Part shown: piece by piece, positions 23,101 to 44,669 of the stretch | How the letters are laid out: every line of letters starts with the position of its first letter | Position numbering within the stretch: the first letter of the stretch is position 1 | Assembly: GCA_964247055.1 (NCBI GenBank) | Contig: OZ176050.1 | Location: 13,640,001-13,704,000, forward strand | DNA: 64,000 nt | Reading direction: 5' to 3' | From: Paragordius varius | Lineage: Eukaryota; Animalia; Nematomorpha | The notes under the pieces: generated by a model | What the model was told of the DNA's origin: nothing | Seen by the model: the letters and a program-made list of their open reading frames with translations, nothing else | Database searches by the model: none | Program-made: the position numbers and the translations under genes

Positions 23101-25713
23101 AAAACAAGTGTAATATAATCTATGGGTGGAGCCATATCTGCATTGGTGCCCCCTCGAAGGGTTAAAGTTGATGTCACCAAACTTTGATTGCTGGAGTGTT
23201 TCAATTCACGGTCCCGTGAAGCGAAGAGTAAGCAAGGGAAAGCGATTTGAAGTAATAAGCAAACGCTTCTAATCAAGGGGGCAAAAAATTGATAAAAATA
23301 TATACGATCCACGTGAAATAATGTTTTTATATTCAAAAAATTGTGATTGATTAATATAAGTATATTTATATTTGAGTAACTTGTATAATTATTGATAGTA
23401 AAGTGTATTTCTTTTATTCCTTTAAGCCATATTTTATCGTAATAGATAGATATTCAAAGTCTATTAAACATTTTAAATATTGTATTAACATTTCGATTTC
23501 ACTCTTAAAATGAAATGTATCACACATAATTAGAAAGAAAGCTTGTTTTTAGATAATCCTACCAATTTTGTGGTGTTCCTTTTAAATATAGATATTTGAA
23601 TATAGCAGTGGTTTTTTATAATAATAATTACATTATATGATATCATTCTTTCGAGCGGTCATATCCGTAAATTATTTCGCCAGAGAACCCTGTATATGGC
23701 GTCCTCGCGTTTTAGGTTCAATTTTGCCATGTCCCTCTTAATTGTATCTATCCATCGCGTTTTAGGGCACCCTCTTCCCCTCTTATTTTTCACAAGATAA
23801 TCATCAATCTTTTTACCAATGTAATTATTATCAATTCTTTCAACATGTCCGAACCATCTTAAACAATTTATCATCATCTTTTGTGTTACCGGTTTGATTT
23901 CCCTACTTCCTCTTATGTAGACATTCCCACTTTGTCATTCCTCGTTACACCGCACATCAATCTAAGCATTCTCATTTGGATAACCTCAAAAGACCTCTCT
24001 TCTGATTTCTTTATTGTCCATTGTTGGCTGTACAACAGCACTGTAAATCTTACCCTTGACTTTTAGGCAATATTTTTATCGCACAAAACCCATTTTAGAT
24101 CTTTTTTATAATTTGCCCAACTATTTCAAATTTTTAGATTTATATCATGCGTTAAGGAACCATCTGCTGCTAAAATAGCTCCTATTATATATCTGCGCAT
24201 TTTGAAAGTATAACAAAAGAAGAAGTCCAGGCTGGTTTAGAAGACATGTCTATAAATCAGGTTGCAGTCCCAAACGATATTAAAATAAACTGAAAATAAT
24301 GTTAGAGAAAGGTATTTTTTGACGGATATTCTTATGGTTAGTATAGATATGATACCAATTAAATGGAAGGAGAGTACTGTTTCCAGTTTCAAGGTTAAAG
24401 GAGATATTAATGATTGTAATAATTACAAAGAGATAAAGGAGTTATTTGAGAAAGTACTAGAGAAACGAATGAGAAAAATGGTTAGTATAGAGGGTAAACA
24501 ATTTGGTTTTATTCCAGGAAAACCCACCATCGATTCGATTCAGGCAGTAAGAAGGTTGATTGAAAAGCAGATAAAAATGAAAAAAGAGTTGCATGGTATT
24601 TTAATCGATATTGAAAAGGCGTTTGACAGAATACCACGGAGTAGAATATGGTGGAGTTTAAGACAAAAAAACGTTGAAAGTTACAAAAAAATTTCAAAAA
24701 GCATGTACGATTGACACCATACCAAGGTTAAAACACACCAGGGAGTGTCAGATCCTATTCAAATAAACCAGGGCGTCTAACGGGGGTCAGCAATCAGTCC
24801 GTTACTATTTATAATATTCATAGACAAAATTTCAAAGTGAGGCAACATGGGGGCTACTATTTTCTTTATGCAGACGACCTTGCTGTCAGACGAGTTACAT
24901 GAATTGAAAGAATTGGTGGGTAAGTGGATTGATGTGTTACGACGATGCGGTTTAAAAGTTAATAAAAAGAAAACAAACTTATAAATTTCGGTGGTAATGA
25001 GAAAAGGAAATAGGAGAAGGGTGGTTAAAATGTCATGAAGAATGCAAATATTTAGGAGCGATTTTAGCAGCAGATGGTTCTTTAACGCATGATATAAATC
25101 TAAGAATTCGAATACAAGGTTCTTTTATCATCTAATTTATTTAAACAGAATAAAAATTATGAAATTTATGTTTATGGGTGAAATTAAAATTAATTATTAA
25201 TTTTAGGGTACTTTTTATAAAGGGCAATAAAATAATTAGTATGGATAAATTTGTTAAAAGACGCGGTTGTGGAGAAAATGAAGTTTATTTAATGATTTTC
25301 TTTATAAAAATTTAAATTATTTTTATTTTACTCCATATATAAATAAGAACATGTATTAATATTTAATACCCTGCAGTTTTAGCGTCTGCAACATAATCGG
25401 CAAATATCAATTTGTGAGGGGTAAAACTGACACATGTCGAACCCTCTTGTGATCCAACCAAACTTCCTTGAGTAATATTTTGCACCAAAAATATTCCATT
25501 AAGATGTTGCGATCTAAATATAAACGTTAATTCAAAATTTTTAAATACCTTAACCCAGGAATTTTTCTACCAGCTCTTATTTTAACTATCTTTACAGGCT
25601 TACATAATATCGCGGATAATGAAATAGCTGTTCGTAAAATTTGACCGCCCTTTATATTAGAAAATAATTTATACCCCTTCTTTGACAGAACCATCAATAA
25701 CGCACATGGCCAT
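20132..25713 (-). CDS. RTCA: RNA 3'-terminal phosphate cyclase, 9 exons, ~409 aa
   Basis: Exons (minus): 25713-25675, 25649-25549, 25513-25370, 23268-22824, 22391-22234, 21914-21856, 21541-21447, 20852-20745, 20212-20132 (1230 nt). Motifs: IDGSVKEG|[17 protein letters not shown]|SQHL, DAKTAG|[41 protein letters not shown]|LLLFMALA, and GPLTLHSES (adenylated His motif). Confidence 0.95.
21031..21307. mobile_element. MITE family B (TA|CAGTAAAAAT..ATTATACGGACAAAACG TIR), Tc1/mariner-like
   Basis: Inverted termini, mostly TA-flanked. Other copies: 1-38 (right end), 14652-14922, 16032-16276, ~16480-16740, ~35813-36082, ~36170-36385, ~51447-51715, 52009-52253, partial ~63360-63430. Confidence 0.75.
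23650..24215 (-). mobile_element. Decayed RTE-clade non-LTR retrotransposon, 3' fragment
   Basis: [15 protein letters not shown] and LRWFGHVER...[18 protein letters not shown]...LWR, typical of the RTE C-terminus. Confidence 0.85.
24290..25125 (+). mobile_element. Decayed RTE-clade non-LTR retrotransposon, RT core fragment (in RTCA intron 3)
   Basis: RT motifs [38 protein letters not shown] and YLGAIL, interrupted by stops and frameshifts. Confidence 0.85.
25514..25548 (-). other. 35-nt spliceosomal intron (RTCA intron 2)
   Basis: GTATTTAAAAATTTTGAATTAACGTTTATATTTAG. Removal restores PGLR-SQHL; retention hits an in-frame TAA. Confidence 0.9.
25650..25674 (-). other. 25-nt spliceosomal intron (RTCA intron 1)
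   Basis: GTATAAATTATTTTCTAATATAAAG. Removal restores the conserved EGGGQILR; retention gives GTA TAA. Confidence 0.9.
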
Positions 25714-33466: not shown

Positions 33467-36400
33467 TTAGATTCGAGGAGCAGTATTGCTAATAACATTA
33501 GTTAATCGAGGTTTATCGACGTACAATGGCCCATTAGTGTAGATTATGTATAAGGATATCAAGCATAACAAAAACCAGATTGAATAATATATCAATTGAT
33601 CTTTGTACGTTTCTAAAATTTTTTGAAAAAAGAAGGATTAATAATCAAAAAATGATTAAAATAACATTGAGTTTTACCTGAAGGCATAAGGTATGTAAAG
33701 AGCATCATAGCAAAACTTATGATAAACACAATAGGCATCCCAATATATTTCCAATCTCGATTTTCGGATTTAAAGGGTGAAACATAGGGGAATTCGTCAG
33801 AATTTTGTATGTGATATTTGCCCAAAAACAAATATAACGAATCCTGTAATATAACAAAAAAAGATATCATAATAGACTTGTTAAAAAAGCAAAGTCTGTC
33901 CATATTTTAAAAAATTAATCACACATAACAAATGTTAATTTAAATTTGTTAAATATGTGGTTTCTATATCATTTCTTTATAATCACTCATCCTAATTATA
34001 TTTAAAATCTTAGTGGTATAAAATAATTGGTAATAATAAAGATTTTATTACATATTCTTTGCCGCTTTTTGAATTTAACCGTAAAATTAATTAATTGGCT
34101 AAATTTTATTCGCAAAAAACATTTTTGCTTACTTGAGAAAATCCATCAACAAAATTATTTTTATAATATCTGAGCGCTGAATTTAAGCCATCTTGTATGA
34201 GACCCATGCGAGTGCGTTTTCCAGTTCTGACAAATTATAAGGTTTGTAAATAAATATAAAATTTTTACATTACAAATAAATCAAAATCTAAGTTGTCTCT
34301 TTAATGAACAATTTAAGATGATTGTACTTAACATAAATACCTATTAATCTCTTATTATTTTAATCAATAAAATTGATGCTTAATATTCTATCAGTAACTT
34401 TTAAACAAAGAATAAGCAATTATAATGCTAAAAATAATTGAAATATGTGGAAAACAATAAGCTAAGAAAAACAAATTTTAACATAATTTGCGCTTATTGA
34501 AATTAAAATGATAAGGGAAAACCTTGTAAAATCCGTTTTAAGAGCCGAGGAACCGGCATAATACCAAGAACATACATTAGCATTTTCAGTCCATTCTACA
34601 AAGCAACAATACAATTTATGATCAGAATTTATAAATATATAAAAATATATTTAATTGGAAATGGCCAAAATATATTGGAAAAACCATCAAGCTAAAAATT
34701 TATAATCAATTTTATTTGCAAGACAACAACCGAAGAATGTAAAATTTTTTTTACCATTCTTAAAGACTGTAAAAAGTTCCGTATATTGTGACATTTCACA
34801 TTCAGGTTTATCAGGCATGATCCCAAGATCCTAAAGAGAAAATGTTTAAGATAATTCCAATTAAAAATTTGACTTTTAACTTAAATTTTCTTATTAATTG
34901 ATACAGGATAGAGAATTTTTATATCATTGCCAACCTTTGATTGTGGAAAAATACATAATTTAAAAATAATAAACATTATTATTACATAATTGATTTATTC
35001 ACAGTCATTTTAAAAATTATTTAATAAACCAATAGATAACAAAATAACAATATTAATTATTTATTTTTTGCTTATATAAAGGAGCTAGATAGATTTAAAA
35101 GGAAGAAATTAATAGTATTATAACCAAGTTTAAATTTATGAATTTAACACCTTATTAGCAAATAAGAAAAGTGCATTAGAGTTATAATAAGCTAATAACT
35201 TAGGTACTAATTAAAAAAAGTTGATTAAATGTGATAATCTTCAAATTAATTTTCAAACAAATTTATTTTTTACAAAAAATACTTTGATAAAAAAAATTAA
35301 TATTCCTAAATGGAAAACAAACAAATTATAAACTTTAAGTTGTCTATCCAATACACGACGGCCCAACAAAGATTGTACTACGTTAGTTCGATCAAGGCAA
35401 TCCACGCAATTTATTCGGAACACGCCAGTTTGTAATACAACTTTATTCATAGCTGGGATTCGTAAGAAATATCTGTAATATGTAAATAAAGATATATTAT
35501 AAAACCTTATATGAAAATGTATAAAAAATATGCAGATATATAAAGTTTTCAAGAGTTAATACTTATTTACCATTAATGTAAAATAAAACATTTTGTCCTC
35601 TATTTAGCTTTAACCGTGATCATATTTTATTACTCAAAACTAGTATATTTTGTAATCATGATGTATGTGTGCTTAAATTAAAAAAAAATTAATATTAACA
35701 AAGGGAAAAACTATGGTTTTTTATATTGTGCCATTTTTGATACATTCATTTAACAAATATTCTTTTTTACACACAACTAGTTAATTCTGTGACCACCAAT
35801 ATTAGTTATCTGTGAGTAAAAATTGAAATTATACGGAAAAAAGGTAAAAAATAAAGACAATTTTTTTAAAAAGACAACTATAATTTTTTATACCTCAATC
35901 CTTATAAATTATATAATTACATTCGAAATATATCATTGAATGTGATGCCAATATAAATATCTATTATTTTATACTTTGCAGTTCAAAACAATGAGTTAGA
36001 TTTAAAAAACAAAGATATAAAAGGTAAATTGTCTTTTAGAAAAATATTTTTATGTTTGCCCGTATAATTTCAATTTTTACTTATTAAATTATATTATATT
36101 ATTTTTTAATTATATACCCCAATTCATTTTGGGCTTGTCTATAGTATCCATAAGTTTATCCAATTTACGTAAAAATATAAAGACAAAATTCTTTTAAAAA
36201 CAACCATAGTTTATACCTTACATTGGTATATATATTAATTGTGATACCAATATCCATCTCTATGTTATACTTTGCAGTTTAAAACAATGAGTTTTATTTT
36301 AAAAAAAAGATTCAAAAAAATATGGTTAGGTTTTAAAAAAATCTTTATAATTTTACGTTTGCCGGTATAATTTCAAATTTTCCTTATTAAATTATATTAT

Positions 36401-39400
36401 AAATTTTCTATTAAATTTTAAGTGTATAATACCCCAATTCATTTTGGGCTTGTGCTATAGTATCCATAAGTTTATCCAATTTATCATACTGCATGCCCTG
36501 TAGCTCAGCGTGAAAATCAAATTGGTAATATCTAATAAAATTTAGATATTATACTATAAACCATTTACAATTTAAATTCCCCCTTAAAATAAATTATGTG
36601 TTTTCGGGCTTATATAACTCATTATTGATATATAATAGATCTTTAAGGCATATTTATTATTTTTGCAGTATTATTTTAAGTTTAAAACAAAATTTTTATT
36701 TTTTAAAAATATATAAAAATATAGGTATTTTTAATCTTAAAAAACATTTAATTTATTTGAGGGTGAAATTGAATTGTTCAAGGGTGAATTTGAATCGTTT
36801 AAGGGGGAATTTGAAAATGGTATATTATATTATATACCATTTACGATTAAAATTCCCCTAAAAATAATTGTGTTTTCGGAGAAATTCAGCTTATTATTAA
36901 TATGAAAGATATTTTTATGGCATAGTTTATTATTTTTTCAGTATTTTTAATTTTATTTATTAAAAATATAAAAAATAGATGTAATTATCAGATCTTAAAA
37001 AACACATAATTTATTTAGGGGGTAAATTTGAGGTGTAAATGGTATATTTTCAAAAAGAATAATAAGTAAATATTTGATATTACATAAAATCATTAACCAA
37101 TTAATATCCGGTTGAAATTATAAAAATTTTTTACACCTAATTTATTGAATATGGAATTCACAAAAAACGTAATCGTTTAAAACTATAGCAAAACATATAA
37201 TGTGCTACTTTTAAATAAGTCAAAAATATAAACTATATATAGATAGATAGATATTTAGAATTAAATTGTTTCCGATAATATAAATTTATATTGGGTTTAT
37301 AATTGCAAAACAATTATCAAAAATAAAAATTAAATTCTAAGCGTAAAAAAAGACAAAAATACCAACTTTATTAAATCAGAGGCGTTATCAAGTACAGATT
37401 TTTGAAAGGCTTTGGATAAATCACCTTCGGCCCCGCTGTTATCAAGCTTTATTGGTGAAATAAAAAAATAAAATTTTATATTGGCTAATAATTTAAAGGA
37501 AGAGTCTCATTTATATAAATTGATTATACTAGTATAAAATGAATGATTAATTACAGTAAAAAGAGTTAATATTCCACGTATAAGACGCACATGATTAATA
37601 GATAGTAAACCTAATGATTGATGTGAAAACCGCTTGAAGTTATTTATATTTTGTTAAAAAACCAAACGAAATAAAAGAAACCGTTCGAATCAATTCAATT
37701 ATGTTGACGAATTGCAAAGAATAAATAGCAAAATTAAACTATAATAAATTAATTTTGCTCAGTTAGGTGGAAAATACAAAAAACGAAAAAAATTTATTGT
37801 ATGAAATGCACTTATATCAATAGTTTTTATCACATTAAAAAGCCTATTATTGCATTTATTATAAGTTTTAAAATTTTGACTTGATATTTTTATTACCAAT
37901 CAAACCCAAATCCTAAATAATAATCGAACAAATTTTTAAAATATGTCGCAAAACAGATCTTTATTTATAAAATCAGCCATATTTATAACCCCTATTTTAT
38001 CTCAATAACTAATGCGTCTGAATACGCGGCTTTGTATATAAATTGTATTAGGAAAAAGAAAACAAAATCTAAATTTTTAGGTAGAAAGTTACCTCTTTAA
38101 CATAATTTACGTTTGGTAAATTATTTAACTGTACTTATCAAAAAATCTAGGACCTACCTCTCATAATAATTATAAATTTATTTTTACCAGGTTAAGTATG
38201 ACTTGTTTTCCGTAAGCATGGATTTGTCGATTAATGTGTTTCATAAAACCCGATACCTAAAAATAAGAGGATGCTTAAAATATATGTATATATATATATA
38301 TATATATATCTATAAACCAGAGTATAAATATTAGCAAAAAAATGAGCATATTTTTAGAACATTTTCCGATTCAAACTCTACGCCTTTTTAATCAATTACA
38401 TTTTTTCTCTCAAAGTCAAGATTTATTCTAAACTTTTTTCATTTTTACTATTTTAATATGTTTAATAAGAATCCCTAATATTCTTAAAGTTTTTTTTATA
38501 TGCTAATAAATACATATCATAAAGTTTGTGTTAAAAAAGCGTTGCTTTCAAAACTACATTCCTAAAGCGAATTTAAAAACAACAATACAAATTAATTAAC
38601 AAATTATATTAATTTTAATTACAAAAAAAATTAGGTGGGAAAATGCTGTGTTTGCCTTCTAAAGTGTTGAATGAGGGTTTGGTATAAGAAAAAGTGTTGA
38701 TTATTGAAAAATGAATAAAATTATTTTTAACAAAATCAATAGCATACTTGATCTGCAGTTGTGCTAATAACTGGACACGGTTTATAACGCAAATTCGGTG
38801 CCTGAGTCCAAAACAATGGTACTGAACCACGCGTCTAAAATTGTTTAATTATATTTATTCATTTAGGCATTACTAATCGGTGGAATTAAAATTAATTCTA
38901 GGAAACGCTTTATTTATCGCAGATTTAAAAGCATTTCCAATGTTAAAATTTAATTTAAAATATATTTTATCTAATTCTATTTTCTTAAATGATACAATTT
39001 TAAATTAAAGAAACGCTTTATTCTATAGAAATGTAATTATAATTAATCCAATCATAAATTTATTACCTTAATCTTTTTGTAAATGCGAATTAACTTTCTT
39101 TTGGTTATTCTACAAAATATAATAATTTCTTGTAACTGTCGGTCAAATGCACAACAATCCTAGTTATAACCCTTAATAAAATTTGATACATTTTTAGTAA
39201 ATAGGCTTCCAATACAAATAACCATGTCTTACTATGTTGCATTAACTTAAATTGGATAATAAGAGTGAGTTACGTGTAAAAGATAAGGTTGGCGTATGAT
39301 ATGACTATTAAATCCATTTTTTCATAAAGCGCAAAAAATTTGGATATCCATAATTTGTTAAATTATCCTCTTATAGAATCCTGGTAAAATCAACATTTCT

Positions 39401-42400
39401 TAAATAATATTTCAAATACAAGAAATTAAAAAATGTTATATTAAGTTTGCATTTTGTAGTATATTATATTTGACATCTAAAGGTTTATATATATATGAAT
39501 GCCCATAAATGTATTTGAAATGCGACCCGCCATTTTTTAAGTTAATAATACGGCCAGCAAAGTCATTTTATTTTCCACCCCTGATATAAATTATAAAATA
39601 AAAATTAGAAAATAATCAATTTTGTAAAATTATACACCTATTCAAAAAATCGGTTAAGAAATAAATTTAATTAGATTTGCAATCAAGGGTCTCCTAACTC
39701 TCTATATTAATTTACGATCTAATCGTGTATATGTTATTCATAAACACGATTAGCAGCATTTTTATCACTTAAACGGGCGACCTTATATATATATATGATA
39801 ATCATATTTAATCTTATATAGTTGGGCAATTTGCAAGCATTACAGTAGTGTATGGAAAAAATGAAAGGAAAAGATTGTTTATTCAACACTTTTTTGTTTT
39901 TTCCATACACTGTTTTGCGAATTGTCCTACTATAGTGTGAAAAAAGCAACCATTAAAATGCACATATACCATTTACAGTTCAAATTCACCCTCGAACAAT
40001 TCAAATTCACCCTAAAAAACATATATGTGTTTTCGAACTAATATAACTGATTATTAACATGAAATATATCTTTATGGCATACTTTATTATTATTTCAGCA
40101 TTATTTTAATTTTAAACAAAATTTCATCTTTTAAAAATACATTAAAATATAGGTAATTTTTAATTTAAAAAAAAACACATTATTTTTTTAAGGGTAAATT
40201 TAAATTGTTCAAGGGTGAATTTGAATTGTAAATGGTATAGTATATAAATGTTTAAACAAAACCTCAATGTAAGATCCACAATTTTCCATACTTCGATCAG
40301 GTGTTGTCGGGGCGTTTTTATTAATTTCCAAAGAAGCGTTATTAAGGTTAGTTGGCATAAGTATAAATTGTTCCGTTTCTATATAATTAGCTGGGTGACC
40401 TTCCTCATCAATACCACGTGTGTAATATCTACACAATTATTTAAGCAATATAGTTTTAGAAATAAAAACGTGAATGTAAAACAAAATGTTTGAAAAGATA
40501 ACCATATTTTTTTGGTTTTTCTGGATAAAAACATCGTTGGTGCTTATGAAATGAGGATTGGAGATGGGAATAAACTATACACTTAAATATGGAATTAGGA
40601 GTTTTAATTATATTAAATTTAATTTAAGTGGTAAAATAATTTATATCATTCCTTATTTCACCTATAAACATTACACATTGAGGTTAAAAAATATGGTTTT
40701 TTATTGAATAAAAATTCTTTTGCTATATTATTCCGATTATATAATTAAGATTGGGTTAAAATCAGAGGGTTATGTTATTTCTATAATATGTATTTGTTAA
40801 AAAAGTAATTCAAGATTTATATGATGCTCTTACTTGGTCAAAGGGTATTTACGCAAAAATTAAAAATACGCAAATTTAAATTTGCCTATAATCTAATCAT
40901 ATAACTCAAGTTTTAATTAAATTTAAATTATTGAGAGCCAAAATTTAATTTATGAACGTAAAAAATCGTGATTGCGTTATGAAAAATTTAAAATATGCAT
41001 ATAACATATAAATTTTATACCATTTGCACTTCAAGAAAGTGAACACTTCAAATTAGTCCTTAAAGTTTTAGGTTTGGATTAAACCATAAATTTGTATAAA
41101 TATATTTTTTTTATTTTTGATTTATTATATATTTATTGATATACAAAAAATTTTCATTTGAAAATCACTTTTTTGAACTAATTTTTCCAATTCAACAATA
41201 TTATTCAATTACAATTGTTTTCAGTTAAAAATTGTAATCAATAACCCAGAACACTTGTATAGTTAATATTGTTATAAAAGTGGTTAAATCAAGAGAATAG
41301 GTTAAAAATGATATAAAAAAGAATGATACACGGTTTGATTGATAAATGTTAAAACAAATTAAAAAAAGGTGAAGGATCAACTTGAAATGTTTAAGGACCA
41401 AGTTGAAATGTCAAAGGACCAAGTTGAAATGTTCAAGGAAACTCCTAAAGTGCAAATGGTATATTAAAAGTATATTTGAAAATTTAACCTTAAATTAAAA
41501 AAAACCATTAAAATTCTGCCGCATTTTATTCAAGAAGGTTTATTTATATTTTTCTTAAATATTTTACATTTTTTGTTTAATTCCCATATTATTACTTACA
41601 ATATAAGTAAGTCTCCCATTTATAATTATAAACTCTAAAGCAAAATATTGAAAAAAAAATGTTTTTAGGTTAAAACTAACCTTACACCCGGGTTATGAAT
41701 ACTTCGTCGTGAAATGATTCCCAGCGTTATTTCATGATTTTGTGGAACCGTTGGAGTATTCGTAAGTCTATTTTGTGTGGAATTTTGTTGAGAATTTTCA
41801 TTAGTGGTATTTATGTTAGTATTATTTGTGTTGGGGGTAGACGTCAATTTAAGTGGTACAAATATTTTAGTTAATGATATAAAACCACACATTATAGGAA
41901 CTTTGTATGGATCAAGCTATAAAAATGGATAAAATTAACTTTTATTGCAACTTTTTAGAAACTACAGTGTAAAAATAGTATAAATAAATTAGTTTGAAAA
42001 AAGATTAACTGTAAAGATATCAACTTACTTCAGGATTTCCCAAAAATTCTTGCATTAGGTATTGATTCCAAACAAACCGTTTTTCAGCCTATAAAAATAT
42101 ACCATTTATAGCTCGAATTTATCCTCAATTCCAATTCACCCTAAAATAAATTATGTGATGTTTTCGGACATTAAAAACTACCCATATTATATTTTTATAC
42201 ATGTTTGAAAAACAAAATTTCGCATAATAATAATATAATACTAAAAATAATAATACTATGCCATAATGAACAAATAATTCATATTAATATTAATGATGAT
42301 AAGTTACATTAGCCCGAAAACACACATAATTTATATTTAGGACAAATATGAATTTTTCAAGGGTAACGTTGAGCGTGTAAAGAATGGTATATGTATATCT

Positions 42401-44131
42401 TTATTTACAATTTAAATTCACTTTTTAACAATTCAAATTTAAATTCACCCGAACAATTTAAATTCAAATTCACCCTCGAACAATTCAAATTCACCATTAA
42501 ATAAATTATATGTTTTTTTAGAATAAAATTTACTTATATTTTTATATATTTTTTAAATTATATTGAAAAATAAACTATGCCATAAAGAGATATATTTCAT
42601 ATTAATAATGAACTATATTAGTTCGAAAACACATAAGTTATCTTTTGGGCAAAAATAAATTGTTCAAGGGTGAATTTGAAATGTAAATGGTATATATAAA
42701 AATTGATTTCATATATATTAAAAAACGGAAAAACCCGATCAAAAATGGATTGCTGGACAAAATTAGGCTGTTGCCCAATTTGATGCAGGCTTTGTAAATT
42801 GTGTGTTAAATCATACGAGGTGGCAAAATAAAAACGACCCAAGGTAAGAACATGATTAAGCATGGACACATAAATTTTGTTATCTTGAAGCTAAAAATTC
42901 ATATGAGGGTAAAAATTCATGAGAAGTTGTATATAAAAATATTATAGCTTCAAAATAAAATATTTAGTTCCTTAAGTTTAAGCCTCTCATCAAACCGATC
43001 AATAATTTGGGTTATGATTTGGATAGATATGTAAATTGCTAACATATTCAATTATTGACTTAAAATAGGAAAAAATATGAATTAAAATGATTTTTAGCAA
43101 AAAAATCTTTATTTTTTACATACATAATTCCAATTTTGAAGCTAGAAAACGTGAAAATAAAAGTGCAATCAGATATTACTTTCAAGCGGATTGCCATAAA
43201 GAAGTAGCTTCGAATCCATTGTTTTAAAATGGTTTTGATTTTATTATATATTATATTAATAAACAAAATATTTAAAAATTAATTTTATTGTTGATCTATT
43301 TCGCCGAAAAACTATAATATGCTTATACATGTCGAACACAGGTGACAACAGTATATAATAAGGTTAACATACAAGATAAAAACGGCTATTCGGTTAAAAT
43401 GGTTATGGTTTAATCCCTATTAAAATCATCAACTACGACTCAAAATTGGAAAACAAAAATTAAAATTTTAAAAGTAGAATTTTAAAATGAATTTTAAACG
43501 TAATACATTTAACCAAGGAATTATAATTAATAATATGATATATAAGCTGCATTTTTTTTAGTTGTCAAAAATCGGTTGATATTTGGTTAAAAAACAATAA
43601 CTGCACATTAGCATGGCTTTTACAAAATTTAAAAGCCAAATTTTTGAAGTTATCGAAAAAAAGGTTGAAATTTTCATAAATGTATCCCTCTTAATAATTC
43701 AATATTGGCCCTAATTTATAATAATACTTTTGGTTCCGAAAGATGAAAGTAACTTTTGCAATAGGGTATAATATTGAATGTTTCGGCTTGCCAAATCATG
43801 TGTCCAGAGATTTCACCAATGTATTTTCTTGAAGCAATCACAATCAAATAATTTCCTAATTGTTGTTAAAATTAAATATTAAACCAGCTAAAAGTTTGAT
43901 TGTCCCAATTATTCCATATATCTTTAAGGAGCGCTCAAAAGCAGTAGGGATCTGTTTTGGACCTTAAATTTAATTTTTATAAACCTTTAACCACATTTAT
44001 TTCGTTTGATACTCTATCAATAACCAATGTTTCATGGTTGTTTTCCAAGGGATCAATAATAAATTCTTTATTAGTTATATATCTAAATATTAGAAAAATA
44101 TTTACAAAATTAATTCCTGATATAGCGTCAT
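33467..44131 (-). CDS. SACM1L: Phosphatidylinositol-4-phosphate phosphatase SAC1, 18 exons, ~658 aa
   Basis: Exons (minus): 44131-44106, 44082-43985, 43962-43885, 43855-43728, 42890-42735, 42088-42029, 41916-41681, 40428-40263, 38834-38748, 38256-38188, 37446-37367, 36531-36433, 35472-35334, 34830-34755, 34595-34523, 34226-34133, 33843-33678, 33612-33467 (1977 nt). Motifs: [20 protein letters not shown]|[56 protein letters not shown], catalytic CX5[27 protein letters not shown]|TGKR, and two C-terminal TM helices. Confidence 0.95.
39969..40235. mobile_element. MITE family A, clean copy in SAC1 intron 8
   Basis: TATA CCATTTACAGTTCAAATTCACCCTCGAACAATTCAAATTCACCC ... GGGTGAATTTGAATTGTAAATGG TATA. 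Confidence 0.8.
41020..41459. mobile_element. MITE family F (TA|CCATTTGCAC...GTGCAAATGG|TA, 21-bp AAGGACCAAGTTGAAATGTTC repeats)
   Basis: Inverted termini and subterminal 21-mers. A related copy lacking clear termini lies at ~60270-60790. Confidence 0.7.
43856..43884 (-). other. 29-nt spliceosomal intron (SAC1 intron 3)
   Basis: GTTTAATATTTAATTTTAACAACAATTAG. Removal restores the conserved LLAG-NYLIVI; retention ends in an in-frame TAG. Confidence 0.9.
43963..43984 (-). other. 22-nt spliceosomal intron (SAC1 intron 2)
   Basis: GTTTATAAAAATTAAATTTAAG. Removal restores NVVKG-PKQIP; retention gives GGT TTA TAA. Confidence 0.8.
44083..44105 (-). other. 23-nt spliceosomal intron (SAC1 intron 1)
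   Basis: GTAAATATTTTTCTAATATTTAG. Removal restores ELIL-YITNKEF; retention gives TTG TAA. Confidence 0.85.
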
Positions 44132-44669
44132 AAGGGTTGTATTTAAAATTAATAACGCATATGGTGTATTTATAATTTTTTCATTTGAGAATAACGCAAA
44201 AATTTATTATTTTTATACCATAAATCTAATCTTATAGCTAATTTAAAGTTTATTATTTGGATCATATTATGCATAAATTTAAATATTTTAAATTATTGTT
44301 TATGTCGTCGTATTTGCTTAATTATTTTTTATTTTTTATTTTATTATATATTTGGATTATGTGATCAGGAGCTTAAATTTTTTAAAAAATATTGTTTTAG
44401 TAAAATTTGCCTAGATATATTTTTTATATGGCGAGGTGATTTAAGATATATTTTTAACTTTTGAGGATTTAAAAAATGGCTAAATTTGCGCTCATTTATT
44501 ATATAAATTTTTTATAAAATGCAAGCTTAGATGTGAGATCTATGAATCCCAAATTATTTTGCTCTTCTAATAAAGAATGCCGAGATTTGGCGATAAAAAT
44601 TTTAAATATATGCTAAATTTTGATATCAAATAATTTTTTTTTAAAAAATATACCACTACAAACATATAA

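Follow-up and report, generated by a model that had tools for sequence, protein, structure and literature searches.

Introns shorter than about 30 nt were long thought to be absent from animals, and the known cases come from parasites that are extremely reduced and whose introns are nearly all tiny. The locus described here, from Paragordius varius, raises the question of whether three consecutive segments of 22 to 29 nt, at the 5' end of a gene that also carries kilobase introns, are spliceosomal introns and, if so, how one spliceosome handles both sizes. The gene lies on the minus strand of a 64-kb window (the whole stretch of DNA analysed), and all coordinates for P. varius are window positions. 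Sequence comparison makes it very probable that the three segments are ordinary U2-type GT-AG introns that have contracted to roughly the minimum size that still works (22-29 nt), at ancestral positions in the 5' end of a single-copy SAC1 gene.

Structure of the 5' end of the gene

The first four exons and the three segments, called micro-introns below, are arranged as follows.

44131-44106, minus strand: SAC1 exon 1 from the ATG, 26 nt (start codon plus 23 nt), MTLYQELI plus 2 nt
44105-44083, minus strand: micro-intron 1, 23 nt, GTAAAT...TTTAG (GTAAATATTTTTCTAATATTTAG), after the second codon base
44082-43985, minus strand: SAC1 exon 2, 98 nt
43984-43963, minus strand: micro-intron 2, 22 nt, GTTTAT...TTAAG (GTTTATAAAAATTAAATTTAAG), after the first codon base
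43962-43885, minus strand: SAC1 exon 3, 78 nt
43884-43856, minus strand: micro-intron 3, 29 nt, GTTTAA...ATTAG (GTTTAATATTTAATTTTAACAACAATTAG), after the first codon base
43855-43728, minus strand: SAC1 exon 4, 128 nt; the Sac (Syja_N) domain begins here

A sequence-only reading of this DNA had proposed that three consecutive micro-introns separate exons of 98 and 78 nt, that only their joint removal gives a SAC1-like N-terminus, that the list of open reading frames misses the region and that no intron length is a multiple of three. These observations hold to the base. All three segments are GT-AG, and their excision reproduces exactly the peptide quoted in that reading (330 nt, 110 codons, phase 0 at the end of exon 4). 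Their lengths are of the form 3n+2, 3n+1 and 3n+2. The minus-strand list of open reading frames has no entry over exons 1 to 3 and covers exon 4 only with a fragment of 43 aa. The reading itself, that the three segments are removed to give the SAC1 N-terminus, has in our judgement a high chance of being correct. Gene finders and read aligners with a minimum intron length of about 20-40 nt or above may break such genes.

When the minus strand of 43728-44131 is translated unspliced, stops are met immediately. Retention of a single intron leads to a stop 2-10 codons past the junction, at codon 10 (intron 1), 44 (intron 2) or 77 (intron 3). Since no length is divisible by three and every micro-intron contains stops, translation of an unspliced transcript would terminate prematurely, and the transcript could be degraded by nonsense-mediated decay.

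The micro-introns are markedly poor in G+C (9-14% vs 35% for the SAC1 coding sequence). Candidate branch motifs were picked by eye in five introns, these three and two from the RTCA gene described below. They are CTAAT, TTAAA and TTAAC in SAC1 micro-introns 1 to 3, placing the A at positions -8, -8 and -11 relative to the 3' end. The hallmarks of the U12-type (minor) class, an RTATCCTT 5' motif and a TCCTTAAC branch site, were not found in the three segments, whose 5' ends read GTAAAT, GTTTAT and GTTTAA. In the mechanism that we propose, the spliceosome would recognize each micro-intron across its own length (intron definition) at near-minimal size. A YTAAY-like motif would serve as branch site, its A located 8-11 nt upstream of the 3' AG and 15-19 nt downstream of the 5' GT.

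Gene model, identity and copy number

The remainder of the gene was modelled by aligning to the window, by local tblastn with positions 43251-43287 inside intron 4 masked, the longer isoform (P0058) of a SAC1-like protein from Gordionus sp. m RMFG-2023, a hairworm and the closest relative found. Junctions were set by GT/AG, frame and alignment score. Those of exons 6 to 18 were fixed by comparison with Gordionus SAC1.

43727-42891, minus strand: SAC1 intron 4, 837 nt, of ordinary size
42890-42735, minus strand: SAC1 exon 5, 156 nt; Syja_N positions 60-96; 62% identical to residues 114-165 of Gordionus P0058 (99-150 of P0001)
42734-42089, minus strand: SAC1 intron 5, 646 nt
42088-42029, minus strand: SAC1 exon 6, 60 nt
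41916-41681, minus strand: SAC1 exon 7
40428-40263, minus strand: SAC1 exon 8
38834-38748, minus strand: SAC1 exon 9
38256-38188, minus strand: SAC1 exon 10
37446-37367, minus strand: SAC1 exon 11
36531-36433, minus strand: SAC1 exon 12
35472-35334, minus strand: SAC1 exon 13, with the catalytic CX5R(T) motif CVDCLDRT
34830-34755, minus strand: SAC1 exon 14
34595-34523, minus strand: SAC1 exon 15
34226-34133, minus strand: SAC1 exon 16
33843-33678, minus strand: SAC1 exon 17
33612-33467, minus strand: SAC1 exon 18

The model comprises 18 exons on the minus strand (44131 to 33467) and encodes 658 aa without a stop. Introns 1 to 17 measure 23, 22, 29, 837, 646, 112, 1252, 1428, 491, 741, 835, 960, 503, 159, 296, 289 and 65 nt, and all 17 are GT-AG. 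Two size classes can be distinguished in this gene, 22-29 nt (n=3) and 65-1428 nt, since all of the remaining 14 introns fall in the latter range.

Database searches were run exon by exon, while the joined protein was translated and aligned locally with fetched orthologues. Exons 4 to 9 match the Pfam Syja_N profile colinearly (positions 15-46, 60-96, 104-118, 126-170, 173-208 and 211-236), in agreement with a genome-wide scan, and exons 8 and 9 each pass the Syja_N cut-off alone. Among 1.8 billion protein representatives, exon 5 has one strong match, the Gordionus SAC1-like protein (P0001, of which P0058 is the longer isoform), at 62% identity. Exon 4 shares 69% identity with residues 70-114 of Gordionus SAC1. 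Over its length the model is 62% identical to the Gordionus protein (XP_065315026/XP_065315027; 614 aligned residues) and 42-44% identical to SAC1 of Ptychodera, Lineus and Priapulus. The catalytic signature CX5R(T/S) is present in exon 13 and the translation shows two hydrophobic C-terminal segments. The gene is therefore predicted to encode SAC1 (SACM1L-type) phosphoinositide phosphatase and not another Sac-domain protein.

A search of the 110.6-Mb genome with P0058 found one SAC1 locus and neither a second copy nor an intron-free retrocopy. The other three Sac-domain loci in the genome are far weaker matches. Exons 2, 3 and 4, compared singly with solved structures, gave no match to SAC1 because they are too short at yeast-level distance. 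The protein collection, queried with the full-length protein and with its N-terminal 170 residues, contains no SAC1 protein or transcript fragment from P. varius. Scans of the window for tRNA and Rfam families gave no matches.

Intron positions across animals

The SAC1 loci of Gordionus (L011), the hemichordate Ptychodera flava (L013) and the nemertean Lineus longissimus (L014) were fetched. The annotated Gordionus protein mapped exactly to its locus, and the others were treated likewise. The 5' exons and introns compare as follows.

P. varius: exons from the start 26, 98, 78, 128, 156 and 60 nt; introns 1-3 of 23, 22 and 29 nt
Gordionus: exons from the start 35, 98, 78, 128, 156 and 60 nt; introns 1-3 of 43, 6808 and 318 nt
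Ptychodera flava: coding exons 26, 98, 78 and 128 nt; introns 1-3 of 2249, 2839 and 674 nt
Lineus longissimus: coding exons 26, 98 and 78 nt; introns 1-3 of 659, 167 and 425 nt

Exon 1 of Gordionus is 9 nt longer, while exons 2 to 4 have the same lengths as in P. varius. All 17 intron positions of the gene are common to the two hairworms. Whether the micro-introns occupy ancestral positions, a question already raised by the sequence-only reading, is answered by the ortholog alignment in the affirmative: position and codon phase are common to Gordionus, Ptychodera and Lineus. By this comparison the three positions, present in Ecdysozoa, Spiralia and Deuterostomia, are ancestral bilaterian ones. 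Since the introns at these positions, in the same phase, measure 43-6808 nt elsewhere, the micro-introns probably correspond to shrunken ancestral introns, neither insertions nor chance GT...AG strings. Chance is excluded because the exon lengths equal those in other phyla and GT and AG stand exactly at those points.

These comparisons also bear on the boundaries. The segments could be real introns with at least one boundary elsewhere, at a nearby GT or AG, or splicing could be partial or regulated and leave an intron in much of the message. The AT-rich sequence does offer nearby GT/AG pairs, and very short introns of microsporidia are reported, as cited in PMC13644364, to be inefficiently spliced. 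However, the modelled boundaries alone yield the 98, 78 and 128 nt of the three other animals and a gap-free alignment with Gordionus. We consider a departure of this kind improbable.

The SAC1 gene of Priapulus caudatus (L012; GCA_000485595.2, KQ714894.1) is a single intron-free open frame of 1779 nt, whereas 15-17 introns interrupt those of Gordionus, Ptychodera and Lineus. Being intron-free, it says nothing on intron positions. Here a retrogene may have taken the place of the parent gene.

Selection on the 5' exons

Exons 1 to 6 align with Gordionus codon for codon, with no gaps. In the spliced frame, exons 1 to 3 show 70% amino-acid identity, a dN of 0.22 and a dS of 1.95. Identity at codon positions 1, 2 and 3 is 0.71, 0.88 and 0.52, and the same pattern is observed in exon 4 and beyond. 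As judged from these substitutions, purifying selection acts on exons 1 to 3 when they are read as spliced, which is the signature of a translated frame. A frame translated over these exons needs the three segments to be removed, since it exists in no other way.

This pattern is not that of a decaying 5' remnant. If the segments were kept, the message would start downstream (for example at exon 4), or the locus would be a pseudogene. Such a reading would be consistent with two negative results: exons 1 to 3, which are short, match no Pfam family or solved structure when searched singly, and none of the listed sequencing runs recorded as RNA holds the 5' stretch of SAC1. However, exons 1 to 3 are conserved like exon 4 (dN/dS of about 0.1), the frame is open across all 18 exons, no other SAC1 locus was found in the genome search and the coding part of exon 1 measures 26 nt as in two other phyla. 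The remnant or pseudogene is therefore very unlikely.

A non-spliceosomal nature of the segments (assembly insertions, ciliate-like DNA elimination, translational frameshifting or bypass) is scarcely credible: although AT-rich DNA with introns of 20-30 nt looks ciliate-like, all three segments are GT...AG at conserved intron positions, animals provide the closest relatives, more than 80% of the sampled words of 38500-44400 occur in each of X1 and X2, two genomic runs from the source sample, and the standard genetic code is needed, because beyond exon 4 the frame meets a TAA just inside intron 4 unless its 837 nt are removed, and resumes only at 42890. A ciliate origin of the window, considered in view of its 22-36% G+C and the tiny introns, was likewise rejected: the model needs no in-frame TAA or TAG and is closest to SAC1 proteins of animals. 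The 64-kb window yielded no suppressor tRNA gene.

Relation to known ultra-short introns

Paramecium reportedly has tiny introns (20-30 nt) under nonsense-mediated decay control. The micro-introns of SAC1 resemble introns of this type in length range, in lengths that are not multiples of three and in internal stops that would end translation early on retention. They differ in context, since ciliates have a variant code and uniformly tiny introns whereas P. varius SAC1 is an animal gene read with the standard code.

Among 51 animal genomes, introns shorter than 30 nt were described only in myxobolid myxozoans and in Dicyema japonicum (Hadjez et al., Mol Biol Evol 2026, PMC13644364). The median intron of myxobolids is 22-27 nt, and more animal cases were predicted (PMC13644364). 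As in Henneguya salminicola, Thelohanellus kitauei and Myxobolus (PMC13644364), the P. varius segments are candidate animal GT-AG introns below 30 nt at conserved positions between conserved exons. They share reduced splice motifs (GTa...AG), in which A residues ahead of the 3' AG are the putative branch site, and a tendency of short introns to cluster beside short introns (PMC13644364). However, nearly all introns are tiny in myxobolids, whose genomes are reduced, while only 3 of the 17 introns are tiny in P. varius SAC1, the rest measuring 65-1428 nt. The lineages also differ, a hairworm-like ecdysozoan here and cnidarians in the case of myxobolids. Finally, the myxobolid junctions are backed by long RNA reads whereas those of P. 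varius are drawn from genomic sequence.

Dicyema japonicum (as cited in PMC13644364; genome in PMC6736024) likewise possesses animal spliceosomal introns below 30 nt in a conserved exon-intron structure. This highly reduced parasite has undergone shortening across the whole genome, and no large kilobase class beside the short introns is described for it, unlike what is observed in P. varius SAC1. A literature search for hairworm introns returned no publication. The one-to-one pairs with Gordionus (23 vs 43, 22 vs 6808 and 29 vs 318 nt) indicate how far an ancestral intron can shrink in a working gene.

Expansion of the long introns and the two size classes

The window contains a MITE-like element, about 290 nt long and flanked by terminal inverted repeats of about 59 nt (TATACCATTTACAGTTCAAATTCACCC...); local BLAST retrieved 48 matching segments of its family there. 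Two copies, at 42097-42703 within SAC1 intron 5, account for 603 of the 646 nt of this intron, which would measure about 43 nt without these insertions. The same family occupies 498 of the 835 nt of intron 11 (36550-37047) and 292 of the 1428 nt of intron 8 (39959-40250). The presence of these copies suggests that some long introns are inflated short ones. At least part of the long class could thus have arisen from short introns through inverted-repeat (MITE-like) insertions.

SAC1 intron 12 carries another type of addition. On the minus strand, the final 51 nt of exon 12, the donor and roughly the first 190 nt of intron 12 are duplicated in tandem with 92% identity (35941-36167 versus 36240-36483). 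In the copied exon segment, 1 nt is deleted.

A cursory survey of chaperonin (Cpn60_TCP1) exons in the genome revealed mostly long gaps, a view too coarse for a frequency of micro-introns. Because these genes show mostly long introns, the micro-introns probably constitute a minority class. On balance we favor a genome that holds a discrete class of 22-29-nt introns, shrunk from long ones to the limit of the major spliceosome, beside more numerous long introns that MITE-like insertions and duplications of exon edges have in part expanded again. It would represent the third independent animal origin of introns below 30 nt, the first among Ecdysozoa and the first to be reported with two size classes instead of genome-wide shortening.

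Other features of the window and of SAC1

The RTCA gene (RNA 3'-phosphate cyclase) lies on the minus strand of the window with its ATG at 25713. Its first introns are also predicted to be micro-introns, of 25 nt (25650-25674, GTATAAATTATTTTCTAATATAAAG) and 35 nt (25514-25548). A 99-nt stretch of the exon between them (25551-25649) matches PF01137 with an E-value of 2.4e-11. Their candidate branch motifs, picked by eye, are CTAAT (-8) and TTAAC (-14). The micro-introns are the first introns in both SAC1 and RTCA.

Exon 7 of P. varius SAC1 includes a 32-residue low-complexity insertion rich in N, T and Q within the Sac domain (41725-41830, minus strand). It is absent from Gordionus and from the other orthologues.

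Isoform X2 of Gordionus SAC1 (P0001) lacks 15 residues at the end of exon 4 (L011, 9381-9508) relative to isoform X1, while P. varius exhibits the full-length version. This suggests that exon 4 of Gordionus SAC1 holds an alternative donor.
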